From Haliotis rufescens (Eukaryota), in NCBI RefSeq assembly GCF_023055435.1, contig NW_025963779.1, forward strand, positions 6,634,001-6,698,000: DNA of 64,000 nucleotides, in the 5' to 3' direction. The notes under the pieces were generated by a model. That model saw only the letters and a list, made by a program, of their open reading frames with translations, did not search any database and had not been told where the DNA came from. Within the stretch, counting starts at the first letter, position 1, and each line of letters starts with the position of its first letter. Below are positions 6,112 to 34,857 of this stretch, piece by piece. Both the position numbers and the translations under genes were made by a program.

Positions 6112-6855
6112 ATGAACGTCCTTCTCATTCTGACCGCTGTTCTGGCTGTCTCCTATGCTCGAGACTGTGGACACACAACGGAAACCCCAACGTCCAACCC
6201 CACTGAAGCCCCGACTACACTACAAATACCTACAACATGGCCTGAAGGATCCTTTGCTCTGCCTCAGACCAACGATGGCTGTCCTGGTAGTGAGTGGAAG
6301 GATGGAGCTTTCTATCAAGACACTGAAGATTATTACAACGGAAATACCTGGAACACCACCAATATGAGCGGAATTAAGAAGAAAGACGGTTATTTAAATA
6401 CTTATTGCATCATGGAGGGCACCACTGCCAGATCTGGGAGTTGGCCGGCCGGTACCTACTGCATCTTGAGGAAGAACGGCGTCTGCCCAGGAGGTTTCCA
6501 GGAAGGTTCCCTTCTTTGGGATGATGAGAACAACTACAACATGAACCATGTCTCAGACCAGAGCACCCTCCCCGATGGTGAGTTCAACAAAGACACCAAG
6601 CTGTTTTATTGTTGCCGAGAGGATGCTTCTCCAGCTCAAGAGATAGCCTTGCCAACATCTGCCCCCTTCTACCTCCTGATGAAGACAGGCGTGTGTCAGA
6701 GCGTCGCTGGGATGTCGGTGACAGTGGAGACGATGTTTTGGGATGATGAAGACACCAACAACCACAATGCCAGAGAAGGATCCACTCCCTTTCAAACTGG
6801 AAGTCCTGCCAACATTCATCTCAACTACTGCTACTACTCTCCTACAACACTGTAA
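6112..6855 (+). CDS. Apextrin-like secreted protein (ApeC domain), copy 1, 247 aa, single exon
   Basis: Signal peptide MNVLLILTAVLAVSYA and Thr/Pro linker, then WPEGSFALPQTNDGCP, QDTED, WPAGTYCI, CPGGF, WDDEN, LPDG, YCCR, WDDED and YCYY, the motifs typical of the apextrin C-terminal domain; good Kozak context ACCATG. Confidence 0.92.
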   Translation: MNVLLILTAVLAVSYARDCGHTTETPTSNPTEAPTTLQIPTTWPEGSFALPQTNDGCPGSEWKDGAFYQDTEDYYNGNTWNTTNMSGIKKKDGYLNTYCIMEGTTARSGSWPAGTYCILRKNGVCPGGFQEGSLLWDDENNYNMNHVSDQSTLPDGEFNKDTKLFYCCREDASPAQEIALPTSAPFYLLMKTGVCQSVAGMSVTVETMFWDDEDTNNHNAREGSTPFQTGSPANIHLNYCYYSPTTL

Positions 6856-6983
6856 ATTGTTCAAGAATGTAATCAAAAGGCTTGGGAGAGGTGTATTCTG
6901 CACTGTAATAAATGATATATTTTTCAAGAACTGTGTTGTTACATTTATGCGCTTTCTAGGTACACATACTCCTATTTTATTCA

Positions 6984-7041
6984 GGCACTCGTGAAGAGCA
7001 ACCTCCTCGTGGTGAGTGCTGGGTAGCGCTAATAGCTCTTC
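6984..7041 (+). ncRNA. HDV-like self-cleaving ribozyme (minimal P4) at the LINE 5' end
   Basis: P1 GGCACTC(6984-6990)/GAGTGCT(7014-7020) with G1-U wobble; P2 GAAGAGCA(6993-7000)/T-A-GCTCTTC(7033-7041); P3 ACC/GGT; L3 TCCTCGT; P1.1 CC(7005-7006)/GG(7021-7022); J4/2 GCTAA with candidate catalytic C7029. Confidence 0.88.
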
Positions 7042-7667
7042 CCCCGTGTGGAACCGGGGTAGAATATTTCCACAGCACCCCATTGCTGGTCGTAAGAGGC
7101 GACCAAAGTGGGCAGCCCGTTTGCCGTGGGTTGCGTCCCTGTGTCGGCGGAGGACGGGAGTCTGGTAGTTGAGGGCACTGGTTCCTGGAACTGTGTTCCT
7201 TTGCCCAACACACTACTTCGACCCTTACTTCGCCTAGACGGGTGGTAAGATGGGCCCGGTCTTATCAATCGGCTGGTCATGCCAGGCCCTGTGCGTAATA
7301 TTGTAAATGCACACATGTGTTGTATTTTGATGTATATTTTGGCCTTGGCCATGCATAATTTGTGTGAATTAACTATTTTGGATTATATAAATTGCCTAGA
7401 GTCTTACGCCAGAAGGCGGTGGCTCATGGGCCAATCTGGTGATGTTGACCTCCAAATTCAATATGTATCCAATTACTTGTCATGGGCCGAACCAGCCTGG
7501 CATTTAATTTGGTATACAAATATTGCTATTTGCGTCATACTTGCTGGAGTATATCATCCCTGTATCCCTGGTGTTTGCATGTTGGAGTTCCGGTGCAACA
7601 AAACATCGCTCTTTGTAGCACTCCTTGGTGGGTGGGGAGCAGGGGTGCTGAATTACTATATTTCACC

Positions 7668-8945
7668 ATGTCACACCAAAACCCTGGTTCAACCCGTTCC
7701 AAACGAAGACATGTCGATCTTGATGACATTGATCAAAGTGAACAATTATCTCGTGGCTTAGATTCCTGGTCCCGTTTTATTGTGATTGAGGCAGCTAACA
7801 AACAACCTATTAAGCTAAATCCATTCGCCATTTCCAAAGCTGTTTTAGGAATTTGCGGAGAAGTGAACAATGTTACACGTCTTCGCAGTGGCTCTCTTCT
7901 CGTTGAGTGTACACGGAGACAGCAATCTCTGAATCTTTTGTCTGTAACTACATTCGCAAATATTGAGGTTGCTGTGTCCGTCCACAAAACCTTGAATTCT
8001 TGCCGAGGCATTGTTCGAGACAGAGCTCGCTGCCTGTCCGACATGTCAGAGCAGGAAATTACTGATGAACTGACAACTCAAGGGGTAACAGCAGTTAAGC
8101 GTTTTACTATGAAATCGAGAGATGGTGACATCATCCCGTCAAACACTTATCTGCTTACATTTGCTCTTTCGGCCCTTCCTAAGTCAATCAAAGCTGGTTA
8201 TCTCAACATCGGAGTGGAGGTGTATGTCCCCAATCCACTCCGTTGTTTCAAGTGCCAAAAGTTTGGACATGGTTCTAAATTTTGCAATCACTCTGTAGTC
8301 TGTCAGCGCTGTGGCGAAGGCCATGACAACACTGACTGCACGGCTGAAGTGAAATGTGCCAACTGCAAAGGAACACATCTGGCTTCATCAAAGTTATGTC
8401 CTGAATGGCAAAAACAGACAAAAATCCTGAAGCTCAAACATGAGAACAATATCTCGTTTTACGAGGCTAAGAAGCTCATTGAAAATCAATCTCCACAAAC
8501 TCCACTAACCAGAACATATTCTGCTGCTGTAGCTATCGCTACTCCTGCAAATCCTACAAAAACATCCATTTCTATCCAGACAGATTTGACATGGATTACA
8601 TCCGATCAACCTGTTAACATATCTTCTGTAGTAACTTCACATACATCTTCCACTCAAACAGTAGGCCCATCCGAACCTTTGACTGCTGAAGCTGGTGTGG
8701 AGTCTGTTGCTAAAGATCCAGAGGCTGTAGAACCAGCTACTATCGAATCTGCCGTTGTTACTCTGACAAGAAAAGAAAGAAAAAAATTAAACAGAAAACA
8801 AACTCCTTTGAAATCCTCGTCTTCAGAGGTTTTTCTCAACAACCCCTTTGATGCTCTTGACATGGATGTCACCCCATCTCCAGAGACCAGAAGGGGTTCT
8901 TCTTCCTCACATTCTCGTGAGCGTTCACCAATTGAGCCACCGTGA
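7668..8945 (+). CDS. LINE ORF1, gag-like nucleic-acid-binding protein
   Basis: Three knuckles CFKCQKFGHGSKFC, CQRCGEGHDNTDC and CANCKGTHLASSKLC; frame is open from 7482, and ATG 7668 (CACCATG) is the inferred start. Confidence 0.88.
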   Translation: MSHQNPGSTRSKRRHVDLDDIDQSEQLSRGLDSWSRFIVIEAANKQPIKLNPFAISKAVLGICGEVNNVTRLRSGSLLVECTRRQQSLNLLSVTTFANIEVAVSVHKTLNSCRGIVRDRARCLSDMSEQEITDELTTQGVTAVKRFTMKSRDGDIIPSNTYLLTFALSALPKSIKAGYLNIGVEVYVPNPLRCFKCQKFGHGSKFCNHSVVCQRCGEGHDNTDCTAEVKCANCKGTHLASSKLCPEWQKQTKILKLKHENNISFYEAKKLIENQSPQTPLTRTYSAAVAIATPANPTKTSISIQTDLTWITSDQPVNISSVVTSHTSSTQTVGPSEPLTAEAGVESVAKDPEAVEPATIESAVVTLTRKERKKLNRKQTPLKSSSSEVFLNNPFDALDMDVTPSPETRRGSSSSHSRERSPIEPP

Positions 8946-11900
8946 CTCAATCATCACATTTAATACAGTGGAACTGTAGAGGACTTAGGAATAATTATAA
9001 CGATTTACAACTCTTAATTCAAGATTTTAAACCATCAGCGTTATGTTTACAAGAAACATACTACAAAGAAACCGACACATTTGATATACGAGGTTATTCC
9101 TCCTACAATGTATTTTCACCTCCTGGTGCTAAGGCCACTGGAGGCTCTTCAATCTTCATAAAACAAGGTGTTATCCATAGCCCCGTCCATCTTGCAACCC
9201 CCCTTCAAGCTGTTGCAGTCCGTGTGACTCTGCACATTGTGTTTACATTGTGCTCACTCTATATTCCACCATCTTCTTCTCTCCGACAGTCTGAACTTCA
9301 AGCTCTCTATGATCAACTCCCAAAGCCCTGTATTATCATGGGCGATTTAAATGGACACAATCCACTTTGGGGTAGTGTTCAGACTAATAACAAGGGAAAA
9401 CTTTTGGAAGATTTCATTTCCAGCAACGATTTTTGTATCCATAATGATGGTTCAAATACGTATCTGCATCCCGGTGCAGGTACCTACTCTGCTCTCGATT
9501 TGTCAGTAACAGATTCTGAATTATTAAACGAATTTGAATGGTCCGTCCATGAAGACCTCTGTGGAAGTGATCATTTCCCAACCATTTTAAAACCCGTCTT
9601 ACCTTCCGATGTTCCTCCTTCAACAAGATGGAACTTTTCTAAGGCTAACTGGCCTTTATTCGAAATACTTGCATCCAAAAAGTTACAACCTGATCTGTTT
9701 CTTGATGCTACTGACCCTGTACAATTATTTTCTGATGAATTAAACAAAATCGCTGATGACTGTATTCCTAAGTCCTCTACAAATCCTCACATTCGTAAAC
9801 CATGGTTTAACGATGACTGCAAACAAGCTAGGAAGGCACGGAAAAAGGCTGAACACTACTTCCGTCGCCATCCAATGGTACATAATTTGAATAAATTTAA
9901 AATTTTAAATGCTAAAGCCAGACGTACGTTTAAACAAAATAAACGCCAATCTTGGCAAAATTATGTTTCCAAGATAAATTCTCGTACGCCCATGTCTAAG
10001 GTATGGAACATGATCCAGAAAATTAAAGGTAAAGGTTCTAAATCTAGCATACATCACCTTAAAAATGGAGACGAACTATTGACTGATAAATCGGAAATTG
10101 CAAATAAACTTGGTGAAACATTAGCAAAACATTCTTCTTCCTCTAACTATGTGCCTAAATTCCAAAAATACCAAAAACTGCAAGAAACGAAAATCATAAA
10201 TTTTAAATCAAATAATGGGGAAGATTATAACGAAATATTTTCAATCCATGAGCTTCATACTGCTCTTGGACAAGCACACGATACTGCTACAGGAGCTGAT
10301 AATATACATTATCAACTCCTCAAACATTTACCAGACTCATGTTTAGAAACCCTTCTACTAATTTTTGATGAAATCTGGACATCAGGTGAATTTCCATCCT
10401 CATGGCGAGATGCTATAATTGTTCCAATACCTAAGCCAGGACGTGATCATACTGATCCTTCAAATTATCGTCCAATTTCATTGACCAGCTGCGTTTGCAA
10501 AACCATGGAACGCATGATCAATAATCGCCTAGTTTGGTACTTAGAAACCAATAACCTAATTACAAATATTCAATGTGGTTTCCGTAAAAATAGAAGTACA
10601 ATTGATCATTTAGTACGTTTAGAATCATTTGTTAAAAATGCCATCATAAACAAACAACATGCAGTGTCTATCTTTTTCGATCTCGAAAAAGCATATGACA
10701 CTACATGGAAACATGGTATTTTAAAGGACTTACACGATTTTGGATTGAGAGGCCGTTTGCCTCAATTTATATCCAAATTTTTAACTGACAGACAATTTCA
10801 AGTCCGCGTGGGCTCAACCCTGTCTGATCATTATAATCAGGATCAGGGTGTCCCACAAGGCAGTATCTTGTCTGTTACACTATTTAGTATTAAGATAAAT
10901 AGCCTGTCTAAGGTCTTAAATGATTCCATAGATGGGTCGCTTTTCGTGGATGATTTTAACATATCTTGTTGTGGTAAAAATATGCATTCAATTGAAAGAC
11001 AATTGCAGTTATGTCTTAATAAAATTCAAAGATGGTCACTTGAAAATGGCTTTAAATTTTCTAAAGCCAAGACAAATTGTATACATTTTTGTCGCAAATA
11101 TAAACCACATCCAGACCCTGTACTGTATTTGGATGGCACACCTATCAAAATTGTAAAGGAAGCCAAATTCCTGGGACTTATTTTTGATAGCCATTTGACA
11201 TTTAAACCCCATATCAAATACCTTAAAGCTAAATGCCTGAAGGCACTCAATGTGTTAAAAGTCGTTTCCAATTCAAAGTGGGGAGGTGATCAGAAGACCC
11301 TCCTCCAACTATATAGATCTCTCATACGTTCTAAACTGGATTATGGCTCCATCGTTTATGGGGGTGCTTGCAAAAGCAATCTAAAAATTCTGGATTCTAT
11401 ACATCACCAAGGACTACGGCTCTGCCTTGGCTCCTTCAGAACTTCTCCAATTAACAGTTTATATGTAGAGGCTGATGAACCATCACTAAAACTAAGACGT
11501 CTAAAATTATCTTTACAGTATATTACCAAATTATCTTCAAATCAGTCAAACCCTGCATATGATTGCGTTTTTCACCCCCTATATGAAGACCTCTACCCAA
11601 AGAAATCTTCTCTTATTCCCCCTCTTGGAATAAGGTTGAAAACTGCAATTTCTGATGCAAATTTACACCTTGAAAATATTTCTCCTTACCGCCTTTTGTC
11701 TTCACCTCCTTGGCAACTTATAAAGCCCGTAGTAGACCTGACACTCACACAACTAAAGAAATCACAAACTAATCCCCTAATTTATCAACAAGAATACCAT
11801 CAACTGAGAACTAAATATGATACATACAAATCTATTTTTACAGATGGATCCAAGGATGGTGACGCAGTTGCTAGCGCTACTGTCATTGGAACCAGAACAA

Positions 11901-12628
11901 TATCGTCCAGGTTGCCACATGACAGTTCAATTTTCACGGCAGAAGCACACGCCATCTTAACAGCTCTTAAATACATTCAAAATCAATCGAAGCATAAGAA
12001 GTTCATAATATTTTCAGACTCTCTTTCATGTCTTCAGGCTATTCACAATATGTCCAGCACACATCCACTTTTGCTCGAAATTGTCGAATTATACAATGAT
12101 CTAGCTACTGGCCAATACGACATCGTTTTCTGTTGGTTACCCAGCCATGTAGGAATCGTAGGTAACACAATGGCTGATGCTGCTGCAAAAGCAGCACTCA
12201 ACAAATCTGTGACACCACTTCTTCTACCCTACAGTGATTATAAACCTGTTGTTAGATGTTATATCAGAGATCTAATGCAGAAGAAGTGGGACACCCAAGT
12301 GGGTATAAATAAATTACATGAAATTAAACCAAATATCGGTTACACCTACTTGGGCTGTCAGTCCAGGTTTGAAGAGGTCATTATGCGACGATGTCGTATT
12401 GGCCATTCAAGATATACAAATGAATATCTTTTAAAAGGTGAGGATCCTCCATTTTGTATCCCTTGTGATGTGAGAATCACCGTCAAGCATGTCCTGCTTG
12501 ATTGTGTTGATTTTTCCATCACAAGGGATAAATATTTCAAAGTTTCATCCTTAAAGGATCTTTTTAGTATCAATGCTCGTTTAATTCTTGCTTTTTTAAA
12601 AGAAATTGAATTGTTACATAAATTTTGA
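8942..12628 (+). CDS. LINE ORF2: AP endonuclease + reverse transcriptase + RNase H + C-terminal zinc motif, 1228 aa, GTG start
   Basis: APE (QWNCRG, LQET, GDLNGHNPLWG, SDHFP); RT (YRPISLTS, DLEKAYD, GVPQGSILS, FVDD); RNase H (FTDGSK, AEAHAI, SDSLS, WLPSHVGIVGN); CIPC...HVLLDC. Confidence 0.95.
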   Translation: MTQSSHLIQWNCRGLRNNYNDLQLLIQDFKPSALCLQETYYKETDTFDIRGYSSYNVFSPPGAKATGGSSIFIKQGVIHSPVHLATPLQAVAVRVTLHIVFTLCSLYIPPSSSLRQSELQALYDQLPKPCIIMGDLNGHNPLWGSVQTNNKGKLLEDFISSNDFCIHNDGSNTYLHPGAGTYSALDLSVTDSELLNEFEWSVHEDLCGSDHFPTILKPVLPSDVPPSTRWNFSKANWPLFEILASKKLQPDLFLDATDPVQLFSDELNKIADDCIPKSSTNPHIRKPWFNDDCKQARKARKKAEHYFRRHPMVHNLNKFKILNAKARRTFKQNKRQSWQNYVSKINSRTPMSKVWNMIQKIKGKGSKSSIHHLKNGDELLTDKSEIANKLGETLAKHSSSSNYVPKFQKYQKLQETKIINFKSNNGEDYNEIFSIHELHTALGQAHDTATGADNIHYQLLKHLPDSCLETLLLIFDEIWTSGEFPSSWRDAIIVPIPKPGRDHTDPSNYRPISLTSCVCKTMERMINNRLVWYLETNNLITNIQCGFRKNRSTIDHLVRLESFVKNAIINKQHAVSIFFDLEKAYDTTWKHGILKDLHDFGLRGRLPQFISKFLTDRQFQVRVGSTLSDHYNQDQGVPQGSILSVTLFSIKINSLSKVLNDSIDGSLFVDDFNISCCGKNMHSIERQLQLCLNKIQRWSLENGFKFSKAKTNCIHFCRKYKPHPDPVLYLDGTPIKIVKEAKFLGLIFDSHLTFKPHIKYLKAKCLKALNVLKVVSNSKWGGDQKTLLQLYRSLIRSKLDYGSIVYGGACKSNLKILDSIHHQGLRLCLGSFRTSPINSLYVEADEPSLKLRRLKLSLQYITKLSSNQSNPAYDCVFHPLYEDLYPKKSSLIPPLGIRLKTAISDANLHLENISPYRLLSSPPWQLIKPVVDLTLTQLKKSQTNPLIYQQEYHQLRTKYDTYKSIFTDGSKDGDAVASATVIGTRTISSRLPHDSSIFTAEAHAILTALKYIQNQSKHKKFIIFSDSLSCLQAIHNMSSTHPLLLEIVELYNDLATGQYDIVFCWLPSHVGIVGNTMADAAAKAALNKSVTPLLLPYSDYKPVVRCYIRDLMQKKWDTQVGINKLHEIKPNIGYTYLGCQSRFEEVIMRRCRIGHSRYTNEYLLKGEDPPFCIPCDVRITVKHVLLDCVDFSITRDKYFKVSSLKDLFSINARLILAFLKEIELLHKF

Positions 12629-13450
12629 TTGATATGTTTTGTATATAATATAGTTTTTATAATTGGTAAAATAAAGTTGATGACTGAGATTGTTAGTGGC
12701 TGTATCCTTGAAGGGGGTTGAAGTAACGTAAAATTATTGTCCCCCAGAGAGGATATGTAAGACCACATCATTCAAAGTACATTTATTCTTGCCACAGTTT
12801 TAGACGTAGAATATTTGTTTATTTTAAGTGTTGGCTAAATTGCATATAATCACCAGCGGCTGAAGGGATGGTGTAAATCCTGCTGGGGAGTCGTGCAGGT
12901 AGCAAAAGTATTGTAAGTCCCCACAGTCCCCAGTACGGTGGCCTAACTTTGGTTGCTGGTGATCTATAGCCCATTTTTATATTGTATTGTTGATTGAAAA
13001 TGTATTCTTTTTAAAGCTCTCAACTAGTTTTAAAATCACAACTGTGATACTCTAGTTATTTTTACTGTCCTTCGATGACAGGTATTTACTCCATTCAAAT
13101 TTTTGTATTTTATGTCAGTTCTCGTCACGATATGGCTGAAATACTGCCGATGTGACGTTAAATATTAACTCACTCACTCACCTATTTTATTCAAGGAAAT
13201 CAAACAGATAAAGTTGCCTTTGCACCTTTCTTCGATCCAAATGCTTTACTTGTCTCCGAAAAGTCCATATGTTCGAAGTCAAAAGAACAAAGTATTATGT
13301 CCCATAACCAGTTTAGCCATCATTGCCAGCAACAGTTACTGCCAATCTTTTGACATCAATATTCTCAACAGTCCGAAGCATACATTTATTTAAGCAATTT
13401 CGGGGACAATATATTTTTGTTCTCTGACGTACACAAACTATCCGGTAATT

Positions 13451-17476: not shown

Positions 17477-19404
17477 ATTGTTCAAGAATATAATCAAAAG
17501 GCTTCAGAGAGGTGTATTCTGCACTGTAATAAATGATATATTTTTCAAGAACTGTGTTGTTACATTTATGCGCTTTCTAGGTACACATACTCCTATTTTA
17601 TTCAAGGAAATCAAACAGATAAAGTTGCCTTTGCACCTTTCTTCGATCCAAATGCTTTACTTGTCTCCGAATAGTCCATATGTCCATATGGGTGGGGGCT
17701 TGTGAGGGGATGTTCTTTTGTTTCATTTTCGAATTAGCTCCAACGTTCAATTTCAGAGATTGGACTAAACATGAATGCCTATTTATGACAAGGGATTTAC
17801 CAATACACAATATCTGAGACTGAGGTGGATGAAAATATTTGATGGTTTGTGTCAGATGTCTGTGTCTTGTCAATGGGTATCACTGGCGGCAGCCTCCTGA
17901 CATCGACAAATATATCAGCTCCGGCTCTGAGTAATTTCCCCGTCTGATTAGTAAATCCCTTATTCCCAAGGCTCAATGTGAAATCAATCGAAATGTAGAA
18001 CAAACCAAATTGCCATCATTTAAGATTACTACATTTGAATAATTATATTAAAGATATAGACCAATAGGTCAAGAGCAAAAGAAATCACTTTGATAGACAT
18101 TGTTCCATGTCTTTGGAAAGAATATCCTACCATGATTTGTATATCATGGTCGATTACAGAAATACAGAATTTGACAACAATTAATACACTGCAAATCGCA
18201 TTATGAAATACTATTTCTAATAATTATTCAAAGAAAATATTTCTGTATTTGCATTAATCAACAATTGAAAGTCCTTTGGAAGTGTCAGATGCTTGGCACA
18301 AGAGACAGATCATCTGTAAAGGAAGACAGAAACATTTTCTCAATATACTGTTTTCATTAAAGAAACGCCTGTAATAAACCATATTATCCATGTCGACGGG
18401 ATATAAGTAAGGTCTTGTTTTAGTGTCAACGCCTAGGCCAGTATCCCTTTTACTGTTTGAGAAAAGCTGGGAGCAAGAGATGTTCTGTACTTATAAAATT
18501 AACGGGTTAACACCGTTTTGAGCGGTATTCAAGTTATATCACGGCGTGTTAGCTTAATGTTGGAGGAAAGCCCGAAGCGATGCAGGTTTCATCACAATTT
18601 TCAATTTTATGTCCAATGGTATCTGTTTCGGCAAATAATCGAGATTTTCTTCTGGGGTTGACATTTTATATTCAGTGTAGTATTATCGAAAGATGTCTAT
18701 CTACAAATGATCTGTTTTATAAGAAGAGATATGTTGGAAACACTGTAAAGGAGGATAACAATACCAGAACTACTCTATGAACAAGCAAAACAAGCCAAGA
18801 CGTTACATAGGAACTTCAATTTACATAGAGAACAACATGTCAGTTTAAATGCTTGTCAAATTTTCTATTCTTGAAATAGAAATTAAAATCGGAAATACCT
18901 TTCCCTGTAGTTACCTTGAATATTACCAAAACAATTCTACTTCAACAAGATAACTCATATACATCTTCAAAACATTTCAAAACAAGTTGACAACTTGGAT
19001 ATAACACTAACTTTAACGAAAAACATGGTCCTGTGCTTGCTTACATTGCATTTAATGTGTATTATGCTATTTTGTTGTAGCTGGGGACATATACAACATG
19101 TGTGATTCATACAACACAGTGTTTAGAATCTCACTACTTTTGTCACAAGTGGAATTAAACTTTGTCACAAACGACATCAACTACCAGATGAAGAACATTT
19201 TCATACATGACCGTCTCAACTGACTTGCAAACCGAAGTCAAATGGTGTAGAGGTTTTATCCAAGAAAAATATCGGGCAGAAGCCAGTGATTGATATGTGC
19301 AACATCCACGCAGTCGGGGATCGAAGCCTCTTTCTGTGCCAAGCATTAAGTTGTTGGATGGGGCCTTGTTCTAACTTGTAATCACCGAGGGGTATATGCA
19401 CGTA

Positions 19405-28663: not shown

Positions 28664-30660
28664 ATTGTTTAAGAATGTAATCAAAAGGCTTGAGAGAGGT
28701 GTATTCTGCACTGTAATAAATGATATATTTTTCAAGAACTGTGTTGTTACATTTATGCGCTTTCTAGGTACACATACTCCTATTTTATTCAAGGAAATCA
28801 AACAGATAAAGTTGCCTTTGCACCTTTCTTCGATCCAAATGCTTTACTTGTCTCCGAATAGTCCATATGTCCATATGGGTGGGGGCTTGTGAGGGGATGT
28901 TCTTTTGTTTCATTTTCGAATTAGCTCCAACGTTCAATTTCAGAGATTGGACTAAACATGAATGCCTATTTATGACAAGGGATTTACCAGTACACAATAT
29001 CTGAGACTGAGGTGGATGAAAATATTTGATGGTTTGTGTCAGATGTCTTCGTCTTGTCAATGGGTATCACTGGCGGCAGCCTCCTGACATCAACAAATAT
29101 ATCAGCTCCGGCTCTGAGTAATTTCTCCGTCTGATTAGTAAATCCCTTATTCCCCAGGCTCAATGTGAAATCAATCGAAATGTCGAACAAACCAAATTGC
29201 CATCATTTAAGATTACTACATTTGAATAATTATATTAAAGATATAGACGCATAGGTCAAGAGCAAAAGAAATCACTTTGATAGACATTGTTCCATGTCTT
29301 TGAAAAGAATATCCTACCATGATTTGTATAACGTGGTCGATTACAGTAATACAGAATTTGACAACATTTAATACACTGCAAATCGCATTATGAAATACTA
29401 TTTCTAATAATTATTCAAAGAAAATATTTCTGTATTTGCATTAATCAACAATTGAAAGTCCTTTGGAAGTGTCAGATGCTTGGCACAAGAGACAAATCAT
29501 CTGTAAAGGAAGACAGAAACATTTTCTCAATATACTGTTTTCATTTAAGAAACGCCTGTAATAAACCATATTATCCATGTCGACGGGATATAAGTTAGGT
29601 CTTGTTTTAGTGTCAACGCCTAGGCCAGTATCCCTTTTACTGTTTGAGAAAAGCTGGGAGCAAGAGATGTTCTGTACTTATAAAATTAACGGGTTAACAC
29701 CGCTTTGAGCGGTATTCAAGTTATATCACGGCGTGTTAGCTTAATGTGGGAGAAAAGCCCGAAGCGATGCAGGTTTCATCACAATTTTCAATTTTATGTC
29801 CAATGGTATCTGTTTCGGCAAATAATCGAGATTTTCTTCTGGGGTTGACATTTTATATTCAGAGTAGTATTATCGAAAGATGTCTATGTATAAATGATCT
29901 AACCCGTAATCGCCGAGGGGTGTATGCACCTAGCTCACAGAATGACTGTATTGGAAGTTTATGGAAATGCACGACCTTTTAAACTGCTAATATAACATTG
30001 ACTCATAGTAAACAGTTTACATTCGAACTTAAGAACAAAACAAACGATAAAAAATAATGTTCTATGAAAATATATGGAAAGTCATCAACAAGACATCATT
30101 TAAAGATCTATCAAGCACAAAGATAAGACGGTTTTATCTTTTTCGGTGACCCATTCATATAATTTTCATTACTATTTATGTCCACTGGTATCTGTTTCGG
30201 CAAATAATCGAGATTTGTTTCTGGGGTTGACATTTTATATACATTGTTGTATTATAGAAAGATGTCTTTCGACAAATGATCTGTTTTATAAGAAGAGATA
30301 TGTTGGAAACACTGTAAAGGAGAATAACAATACCAGAACTACTCTATGAATGCACAAAAAGATAATAAGGAATAAACTGGATTAACTAAAGGTAAATACA
30401 TTAATAAAAAAGATATGTATGTTTGGATATCAAGAAAGAAGGAATGATGTGTTAACCCCTTGTCACAATTTCGAAAATTGTATTTTTAATAGACAATTAT
30501 TGAATATTGTATCTACTTAATTAGATTACGAGAAGTATTTATAGCTATCCAATAGCTGTTTTTCCTTAAACCGTCATACATTCAAATATTTCATAATTTA
30601 TACTAATCCTATCAAATAGGCGCAAAACTGAATATGATTCCAGCATATAGTACTCCATGA

Positions 30661-32200: not shown

Positions 32201-34857
32201 ATTGTTTAAGAATGTAATCAAAAGGCTTGAGAGAGGTGTATTCTGCACTGTAATAAATGATATATTTTTCAAGAACTGTGTTGTTACATTTATGCGCTTT
32301 CTAGGTACACATACTCCTATTTTATTCAAGGAAATCAAACAGATAAAGTTGCCTTTGCACCTTTCTTCGATCCAAATGCTTTACTTGTCTCCGAATAGTC
32401 CATATGTCCATATGGGTGGGGGCTTGTGAGGGGATGTTCTTTTGTTTCATTTTCGAATTAGCTCCAACGTTCAATTTCAGAGATTGGACTAAACATGAAT
32501 GCCTATTTATGACAAGGGATTTACCAGTACACAATATCTGAGACTGAGGTGGATGAAAATATTTGATGGTTTGTGTCAGATGTCTTCGTCTTGTCAATGG
32601 GTATCACTGGCGGCAGCCTCCTGACATCAACAAATATATCAGCTCCGGCTCTGAGTAATTTCTCCGTCTGATTAGTAAATCCCTTATTCCCCAGGCTCAA
32701 TGTGAAATCAATCGAAATGTCGAACAAACCAAATTGCCATCATTTAAGATTACTACATTTGAATAGTTATATTAAAGATATAGACGCATAGGTCAAGAGC
32801 AAAAGAAATCACTTTGATAGATATTGTTCCATGTCTTTGAAAAGAATATCCTACCATGATTTGTATAACGTGGTCGATTACAGTAATACAGAATTTGACA
32901 ACATTTAATACACTGCAAATCGCATTATGAAATACTATTTCTAATAATTATTCAAAGAAAATATTTCTGTATTTGCATTAATCAACAATTGAAAGTCCTT
33001 TGGAAGTGTCAGATGCTTGGCACAAGAGACAAATCATCTGTAAAGGAAGACAGAAACATTTTCTCAATATACTGTTTTCATTTAAGAAACGCCTGTAATA
33101 AACCATATTATCCATGTCGACGGGATATAAGTTAGGTCTTGTTTTAGTGTCAACGCCTAGGCCAGTATCCCTTTTACTGTTTGAGAAAAGCTGGGAGCAA
33201 GAGATGTTCTGTACTTATAAAATTAACGGGTTAACACCGCTTTGAGCGGTATTCAAGTTATATCACGGCGTGTTAGCTTAATGTGGGAGGAAAGCCCGAA
33301 GCGATGCAGGTTTCATCACAATTTTCAATTTTATGTCCAATGGTATCTGTTTCGGCAAATAATCGAGATTTTCTTCACGGGTTGACATTTTATATTCAGA
33401 GTAGTATTATCGAAAGATGTCTATGTACAAATGATCTGTTTTATAAGAAGAGATATGTTGGAAACACTGTAAAGGAGGATAACAATACCAGAACTACTCT
33501 ATGAACAAGCAAATCAAGCCAGGACGTTAGTCAGGAACTTCAATTTACATAGAGAACAAAATGTCAGTTTAAATGCTTGTCAAGTTTTCTTTTCTTGAAA
33601 TAGAAATTAAAATCGGAAATACCTTTCCCTGTAGTTACCTTGAATATTACCAAAACAATTCTACTTCAACTAGATAACTCATATACATCTTCAAAACATT
33701 TCAAAACAAGTTGACAACTTGGATATAACACTAACTTTAACGAAAAACATGATCCTGTGCTGGCTAACATTGCATTTAATGTGTATTATGCTATTTTGTT
33801 GTAGCTGGGGACATATACAACATGTGTGATTCATACAACACAGTGTTTAGAATCTCACTACTTTTGTCACAAGTGGAATTAAACTTTGTCACAAACGACA
33901 TCAACTACCCGATGAAGAACATTTTCATACATGACCGTCTCAACTGACTTGCAAACCGAAGTCAAATGGTGTGGAGGTGTTATCCAAGAAAAATATCGGG
34001 CAGAAGCCAGTGATTGATGTGTGCAACATCCACGCAGTCGGGGATCGAAGCCTCTTTTTGTGACAAGCATTAAGTTGTTGGATGGGGCCTTGTTCTAACC
34101 CGTAATCGCCGAGGGGTGTATGCACGTAGCTCACAGAATGACTGTATTGGAAGTTTATGGAAATGCACGACCTTTTAAACTGCTAATATAACATTGACTC
34201 ATAGTAAACAGTTTACATTCGAACTTAAGAACAAAACAAACGATAAAAAATAATGTTCTATGAAAATATATGGAAAGTCATCAACAAGACATCATTTAAA
34301 GATCTATCAAGCACAAAGATAAGACGGTTTTATCTTTTTCGGTGACCCATTCATATAATTTTCATTACTATTTATGTCCACTGGTATCTGTTTCGGCAAA
34401 TAATCGAGATTTGTTTCTGGGGTTGACATTTTATATACATTGTTGTATTATAGAAAGATGTCTTTCGACAAATGATCTGTTTTATAAGAAGAGATATGTT
34501 GGAAACACTGTAAAGGAGAATAACAATACCAGAACTACTCTATGAATGCACAAAAAGATAATAAGGAATAAACTGGATTAACTAAAGGTAAATACATTAA
34601 TAAAAAAGATATGTATGTTTGGATATCAAGAAAGAAGGAATGATGTGTTAACCCCTTGTCACAATTTCGAAAATTGTATTTTTAATAGACAATTATTGAA
34701 TATTGTATCTACTTAATTAGATTACGAGAAGTATTTATGGCTATCCAATAGCTGTTTTTCCTTAAACCGTCATACATTCAAAATATTTCATAATTTATTC
34801 AAATCCTATCAAATAGGCGCAAAACTGAATATGATTCCAGCATATAGTACTCCATGA

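Follow-up and report, generated by a model that had tools for sequence, protein, structure and literature searches.

The LINE examined here, which lies in a 64,000-nt stretch of Haliotis rufescens DNA (the whole of it hereafter called the window), raises the question of how an abalone retrotransposon comes to have a 5' end that is precise to the base, and whether the 58 nt with which the element opens are themselves responsible for that precision. HDV-like ribozymes are an established route by which LINEs such as R2, RTE and L1Tc free their RNA from host co-transcripts. We consider it likely, from the comparisons set out below, that positions 6984-7041 constitute a 58-nt minimal, P4-less HDV-like self-cleaving ribozyme heading a ~6.2-kb APE/RT/RNase H LINE of Haliotis.

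Boundaries of the element and the fold at its first base

The TSD and the three empty target sites in sister units (Table 1) define the insertion as 6984-13181, with a first base that is unambiguously G6984. The original prediction had placed the ribozyme cut site exactly at the junction of TSD and element, and it is at this base that the duplication and the empty sister sites fix it. The same prediction spoke of an intact RNase-H-bearing LINE, a description that agrees with an ORF2 that is intact and encodes an APE endonuclease, a reverse transcriptase and an RNase H. No ATG is found near the beginning of ORF2, whose frame instead starts from a GTG sharing bases with the stop codon of ORF1 (GTGA, 8942-8945), an arrangement that suggests that translation of the two frames may be coupled or reinitiated.

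The host sequence into which the element has inserted also deserves description. The apextrin-like (ApeC) gene units form a tandem array (6112-6855, with sisters near 17593, 28780 and 32317), and the LINE is found in the first unit only. Co-transcription of the LINE with the apextrin-like gene is plausible from this arrangement.

Table 1. Coordinates of the element, its flanks and the parts of the predicted ribozyme (positions in the window unless given as ribozyme positions).
Feature	Position	Strand	Remarks
Upstream host exon, apextrin C-terminal (ApeC) domain	6112-6855	+	Pfam PF16977, E 4e-54; same strand as the LINE, ends 129 nt before it
5' TSD copy	6972-6983		CTATTTTATTCA, 12 bp
Minimal (P4-less) HDV-like ribozyme, predicted	6984-7041	+	58 nt; predicted cleavage 5' of G6984
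P1, 5' strand	6984-6990	+	Pairs with 7014-7020, 7 bp, including the G6984-U7020 wobble; also paired in the Rfam and model R1 alignments
P2, 5' strand	6993-6999	+	Seven contiguous pairs with 7035-7041; helix also in the nested minimum-free-energy structure
P3	7001-7003 with 7011-7013	+	ACC/GGU, encloses L3; paired in the Rfam and R1 alignments
L3	7004-7010	+	UCCUCGU; read from the sequence
P1, 3' strand, then GG of P1.1	7014-7020, then 7021-7022	+	Sequence reading and R1 alignment
P1.1	C7005-G7022, C7006-G7021	+	Two G-C pairs, L3 with the bases after the P1 3' strand
Linker replacing P4	7023-7027	+	GUAGC, 5 nt
J4/2	7028-7032	+	GCUAA; presumed catalytic C is C7029; aligned to GCUAA of the Rfam and R1 models
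P2, 3' strand	7035-7041	+	Sequence reading
Variable sites in L3	ribozyme positions 24, 25
Variable site in the linker	ribozyme position 43
Variable site in the P2 bulge	ribozyme position 51
Variable site in P2	ribozyme position 55		G-C to G-U
Structured 5' UTR module	7042-7290	+	Opens with a covarying H-type pseudoknot; common to bivalve LINE relatives and abalone SINE-like elements
ORF1, gag-like, CCHC zinc knuckles	7668-8945	+	ATG at 7668; open frame back to 7482
ORF2, intact, APE, RT and RNase H	8942-12628	+	Domain search, ORF list
3' tail, short (ACTC)n repeat	13168-13181	+
3' TSD copy	13182-13193		CTATTTTATTCA, 12 bp
Empty target sites in three sister units	17593-17604, 28780-28791, 32317-32328		Uninterrupted 12-mer once each, identical flanks on both sides

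Followed from its 5' end, the sequence presents the strands P1-5', P2-5', P3, L3, P3', P1-3', P1.1, linker, J4/2 and P2-3' in the order that makes up the HDV nested double pseudoknot. Direct reading of the sequence bears out the originally proposed fold in every detail (P1, P2, P3, L3, P1.1, J4/2 and a P4 that is nearly absent), and the cytosine that had been put forward as catalytic, C7029, aligns within the GCUAA J4/2 of both the Rfam models and the covariance model R1 described below. It is followed by U7030, A7031 and A7032, giving the J4/2 cytosine and two adenosines that the HDV-like class requires, while a G-U wobble closes P1 at the predicted cut site and U7004 and G7009 of L3 stand at their expected places. 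A7000 and U7033 offer an optional additional pair of P2, with A7034 then bulged. By minimum-free-energy folding the nested folding energy is no better than that of shuffled sequence (z = -0.36), an outcome that is expected because the proposed structure is a double pseudoknot. A competing hairpin between 7015-7020 and 7025-7030 is also possible and would sequester C7029; the G43A variant would be expected to weaken it.

Abalone copies, bivalve relatives and the 5' cassette

In a search of the genome, the first 300 nt of the element were found at 100% identity in at least 40 places among 2184 first-look candidates. In all 30 of the loci that were fetched, the G is the exact point at which similarity sets in, with unrelated sequence upstream, and another 30 loci reached by way of a diverged ORF1 have the same starting G and again unrelated flanks. 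For the readable abalone copies the count is 65 out of 65 that begin at the G homologous to G6984 behind unrelated upstream flanks. The ribozyme is variable at only five sites among these 65 copies (positions 24, 25, 43, 51 and 55) and no base pair is broken; as 38 of the 58 positions are paired, the chance probability of this distribution is ~0.05 by our own arithmetic, so that it would give the fold weak support and is not covariation. The common start and the conserved P1, P2 and P3 pairing that the original prediction expected of other genomic copies are thus both present, but the 65 copies are near-identical and show no covariation within the lineage, covariation being seen only across the wider minimal HDV-like class.

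One locus has a more complex organization. On its minus strand (L001), a 401-nt unit that starts with ribozyme and module (1501-1901) is followed immediately by a second ribozyme-headed copy that runs from 1902 into a LINE, and this double head could reflect one insertion nested in another or a tandem arrangement of the 5' unit.

Homologues of ORF1 were found in Haliotis cracherodii, H. rufescens, H. asinina and H. rubra. Two proteins annotated in the spider Trichonephila clavipes are also ORF1 homologues, at 42-43% identity, and the LINE lineage is therefore not restricted to molluscs. Between the abalone LINE subfamilies conservation is unevenly distributed. The ribozyme and the module behind it (~300 nt) are 100% identical across subfamilies (6984-7290 compared with loci L003, L005, L007, L034, L036 and L056), whereas the rest of the 5' UTR and ORF1 are only 40-94% identical in 50-nt bins, with a sharp break near element position 300. 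This pattern suggests that the 5' cassette may have been exchanged or homogenised recently, or else that selection on it is very strong.

ORF1 relatives whose 5' UTR has a structured module of ~250 nt in common with the abalone LINE were also recovered in symbiont MAG contigs of lucinid and solemyid clams. The contigs concerned (L061-L070), filed as Sedimenticola, Thiodiazotropha, Solemya symbiont and other MAGs, carry mollusc-type LINE ORF1/ORF2 together with the module, and by their sequence content are almost certainly host DNA that was binned with that of the symbiont. Three independent copies in one lucinid clam, each with unrelated upstream flanks, show similarity that starts exactly at the base homologous to 7042, which is the base directly after the last P2 pair. 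An HDV-like fold upstream of the module is absent from all ten bivalve-relative loci when these are searched with Rfam, the descriptor and model R1. Because the bivalve relatives start at the base homologous to 7042, the 58 nt can be delimited as a separate unit that reaches, on its 3' side, just to the end of P2; judged by these alignments, the predicted ribozyme is a discrete cassette that was added before an older 5' end.

The module that follows the cassette (in the relatives at L064:312-571, L065:119-378, L067:271-530, L066:699-966 and L070:2284-2542) opens with an H-type pseudoknot that has the stem CCCCG/CGGGG and a loop that pairs with a segment just after the conserved GUAGAAUA, and both stems covary between species. 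The module matched no Rfam family, and a metagenome scan for its conserved part returned three matches only, all unrelated and by chance. Its pseudoknot could serve as a promoter, as an RNA that defines the 5' end, or as an exonuclease block. We also considered the module as a candidate HDV-like fold and rejected it, as no P3/L3 lies between the strands of its first stem.

This pseudoknot head is likewise the starting point of SINE-like copies in the abalone genome (L005:36-108 on the plus strand, L005:1386-1457 and L041:702-773 on the minus strand), whose homology to the module is confined to the first ~77 nt and which are not preceded by a ribozyme. In all probability these copies belong to the Haliotis LP-SINEs of Matetovici et al. 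2016 (PMC4758252). As presented there, a ~70-bp LINE-derived head occurs in Nimb-17_LMi, I-3_DR, RTE-9_CPB and LP-SINEs and is proposed to be a promoter; in Haliotis, Littorina and oysters it is found in LINEs as well as in SINE-like elements, which are homologous over the first ~70 nt only. The published head resembles the pseudoknot head (7042 onward) with which the abalone SINE-like copies start, and the paper describes no ribozyme. Judged by lengths and positions, the published head would correspond to the pseudoknot domain and not to the ribozyme.

A fixed transcription start would give all copies an identical 5' end just as self-cleavage would, and the uniform end might thus be set by an RNA polymerase II internal promoter starting at G6984, with the fold acting as a back-up that trims read-through transcripts, or having a role in translation or 5' protection. 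The ~300 nt that remain 100% identical across subfamilies with ORF1 regions of no more than 50-90% identity would fit a conserved promoter or regulatory cassette, the promoter function proposed for the ~70-bp head of mollusc SINEs (PMC4758252) points in the same direction, and L1Tc combines a promoter and a ribozyme within 77 nt (Pr77; PMC4035085). However, a start site alone leaves unexplained the base-for-base match of the 58 nt to a known catalytic core, as well as why the bivalve relatives manage on the module alone, and we regard such a promoter as an unlikely explanation of the 5' end. A promoter and a ribozyme are in any case compatible and not mutually exclusive.

Comparison with Rfam models and with the ribozymes of phages

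That the site would answer to a search with HDV models was part of the original prediction, and three HDV-family models of Rfam do align there, but each of them below its threshold. RF02682 (HDV-F-prausnitzii) scores 27.5 bits against a gathering score of 44, with an alignment that begins exactly at 6984, RF00094 (HDV ribozyme) scores 21.7 bits against 50, and RF01787 (drz-agam-1) scores 16.5 bits against 37; the whole window contains no Rfam match at or above a gathering score. The scores at the site are sub-threshold because 16-31 P4 positions of the models have no counterpart: P1, P3, L3 and J4/2 align with the abalone sequence, whereas P4 takes up 16-31 nt in the models versus 2-5 nt in abalone. 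The core ACCUCCUCGUGGU is common to drz-agam-1 and the abalone ribozyme. For RF02682 the E-value is 0.016 in a 2-kb search over 4227 families and 0.51 over the whole window; counted per single model in the 2-kb search it is ~4e-6, which is relevant because the hypothesis specifies one family and one position. A loose HDV descriptor, with ~8 chance matches in 580 kb, is no evidence on its own. Ribozymes of other types were found neither in the 264 kb of loci L001-L070 nor within the window.

Closer counterparts came from viruses. A core pattern taken from the abalone sequence (P3-L3-P3', seven free bases, GG, 1-25 free bases, GCTAA) was searched in viral contigs and led to 57 loci in phage or viral contigs, 55 of which have a perfect 7-bp P1 and a P2 of 4-9 bp, detected per sequence and formed by many different sequences. 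Several of the loci lie directly downstream of tRNA genes, including those of CUA suppressors. These loci represent the theta ribozymes defined by Kienbeck et al. 2024 (PMC10879173), four examples of which self-cleave in a Mg2+-dependent manner and are inactivated by a C-to-U change. The same paper covers minimal HDV-like ribozymes without P4, for which it cites Riccitelli et al. 2014, and places nearly 99% of the minimal and theta ribozymes in phages only, with few eukaryotic genomes searched (PMC10879173).

From six of the phage ribozymes, and with no abalone sequence, we built a covariance model (R1). In the window R1 has a single match, at 6984-7043, which aligns without an indel and with model position 1 at G6984, and whose 59.3 bits (rough E ~1e-13) are partly circular in that the phage set was retrieved by the abalone-core motif, a choice from which ~40 of the 59 bits follow; what the match contains independently of it is the pairing in P1 and in P2, the spacings and the linker. 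The abalone score is higher than that of many phage members left out of model building. Over the whole genome at least 148 R1 matches were scored, and all 148 align over the full model, positions 1-60.

For comparison of the class as a whole, model-based alignments were used, MAFFT having misaligned P1 where J1/2 is shorter. Among 19 members of the class P1 is 100% paired, with compensatory changes in six of its seven pairs, and the abalone sequences conform to this; G-U is the commonest type of first P1 pair, occurring in 13 of the 19. P3 and P1.1 do not vary among the 19, these being comparison sequences selected on that motif, and P2 is 63% paired in the fixed alignment columns, its register shifting between members.

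The likeness between the minimal and theta ribozymes and the abalone sequence extends to a size of 56-60 nt, the same order of helices, the P3/L3 core ACC UCCUCGU GGU, the GG of P1.1, a linker of 5 nt (GUAAY or GUAGC), the GCUAA J4/2 and the G-U wobble at the cut site, and the two are co-linear with no indel. Variation within the abalone family follows the same lines: the linker variant GUAAC, which is common in the family, is the linker of several phage theta ribozymes, and UCCACGU, an L3 variant seen in a single abalone copy, is also present among phage members. The abalone ribozyme has a higher GC content than the minimal and theta ribozymes, and it differs from the latter in its setting. 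In phages, theta ribozymes stand behind tRNAs, whose 3' ends they release, whereas the abalone one heads an animal LINE and would release the RNA downstream of it. The context that defines theta is a phage genome and a position directly after a tRNA, and the abalone sequence, at a LINE head with no tRNA upstream, is for this reason classed by us with the minimal drz ribozymes rather than with theta.

A chance resemblance or an inactive relic, that is 58 nt without catalytic function, would be in keeping with the sub-threshold Rfam matches (E 0.51 over the whole window and all families), a nested folding energy no better than that of shuffled sequence and the ~8 chance matches of the loose descriptor, yet it is very improbable given that chance alone would be expected to produce the strict core motif ~0.1 times in 1.33 Gb, and only ~4e-6 times with 7-bp P1 and P2 helices in addition (our own arithmetic), that the fold lies exactly at an independently defined element start and is intact in young, intact, high-copy elements, and that the few variants spare all base pairs.

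A proposed route to the 5' end and its relation to known systems

If the predicted ribozyme is active, the LINE could be transcribed from any upstream promoter, here possibly the one belonging to the apextrin-like gene, which lies 129 nt before the element in the same orientation. The transcript would fold through P1, P1.1, P2 and P3 into the nested double pseudoknot, whereupon C7029 of J4/2 together with bound Mg2+ would catalyse attack on the phosphate 5' of G6984 by the 2'-OH of the nucleotide before it. The LINE RNA so released would carry a 5'-OH at G6984 and be free of host sequence, and its complete reverse transcription would yield copies that every time start at the same G. We infer the catalysis and the joint transcription with host genes, and likewise any part that the retained fold may play in translation or in stabilising the RNA. 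Self-excision, as the original prediction had it, gains strength because the predicted cut site is the 5' end of 65 of the 65 abalone copies read, because the abalone sequence aligns co-linearly with minimal HDV-like (theta) ribozymes that have been validated by experiment, and because the bivalve relatives lack the 58 nt, which thus make up a discrete cassette.

Both halves of this combination are already known: HDV-like ribozymes stand at LINE 5' ends, including that of the RNase-H-bearing L1Tc, and P4-less ribozymes occur in metagenomes and phages. A P4-less HDV-like ribozyme in an animal LINE appears to be new, and our literature search found no report of an HDV-like or minimal ribozyme in a molluscan LINE. 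The element is a young LINE with hundreds to thousands of copies, and should the ribozyme reading be true, the minimal class would gain a second biological context, an animal one. It would also explain the base-precise 5' ends of this abalone LINE family, provide annotators with a marker of full-length copies, and mean that the LINE is able to exploit the transcription of host genes, here possibly an apextrin-like immune gene. An active ribozyme of this size would be a very compact natural 5'-end processing module working in a eukaryote. The bivalve comparison shows in addition that LINE 5' ends are assembled from exchangeable RNA modules.

Although speculative, and put forward here as a tentative idea that may well prove wrong, it is attractive to think that the minimal ribozyme is a portable 5' cassette of metazoan retrotransposons and not a phage speciality. 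In abalone it would have been grafted before an older, phylum-spanning pseudoknot head, the resulting ~300-nt cassette being exchanged or homogenised among LINE subfamilies and short derivatives, and the pseudoknot head might itself be an undescribed RNA that defines 5' ends.

A close retrotransposon precedent is L1Tc of Trypanosoma cruzi, which along with other elements of the ingi clade has an HDV-like ribozyme, L1TcRz/Pr77, at the LINE start (PMC3185411, PMC4035085). As in the abalone LINE, the ribozyme makes up the first bases of the element, APE, RT and RNase H are encoded, and the head is common to short non-autonomous derivatives; in L1Tc/ingi as in abalone, conservation between elements that have otherwise diverged is limited to the extreme 5' end. 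L1TcRz differs in its length of 77 nt and in its protist host; it also doubles as an internal promoter. Apart from the general fold, we saw no similarity in sequence between the two.

HDV-like ribozymes of the R2, R4, R6, SART, Baggins and RTE retrotransposons were reportedly described by Eickbush & Eickbush in 2010 and by Ruminski et al. in 2011. To the best of our knowledge, a P4 helix is part of the known retrotransposon HDV-like ribozymes, many of which also have large peripheral domains. The ribozymes of R2, R4, R6, SART, Baggins and RTE resemble the one predicted in abalone in that 5'-terminal self-cleavage frees the element RNA and the cut site coincides with the 5' junction. R2-type elements are, on the other hand, site-specific, whereas the abalone LINE inserts at dispersed sites with variable flanks.
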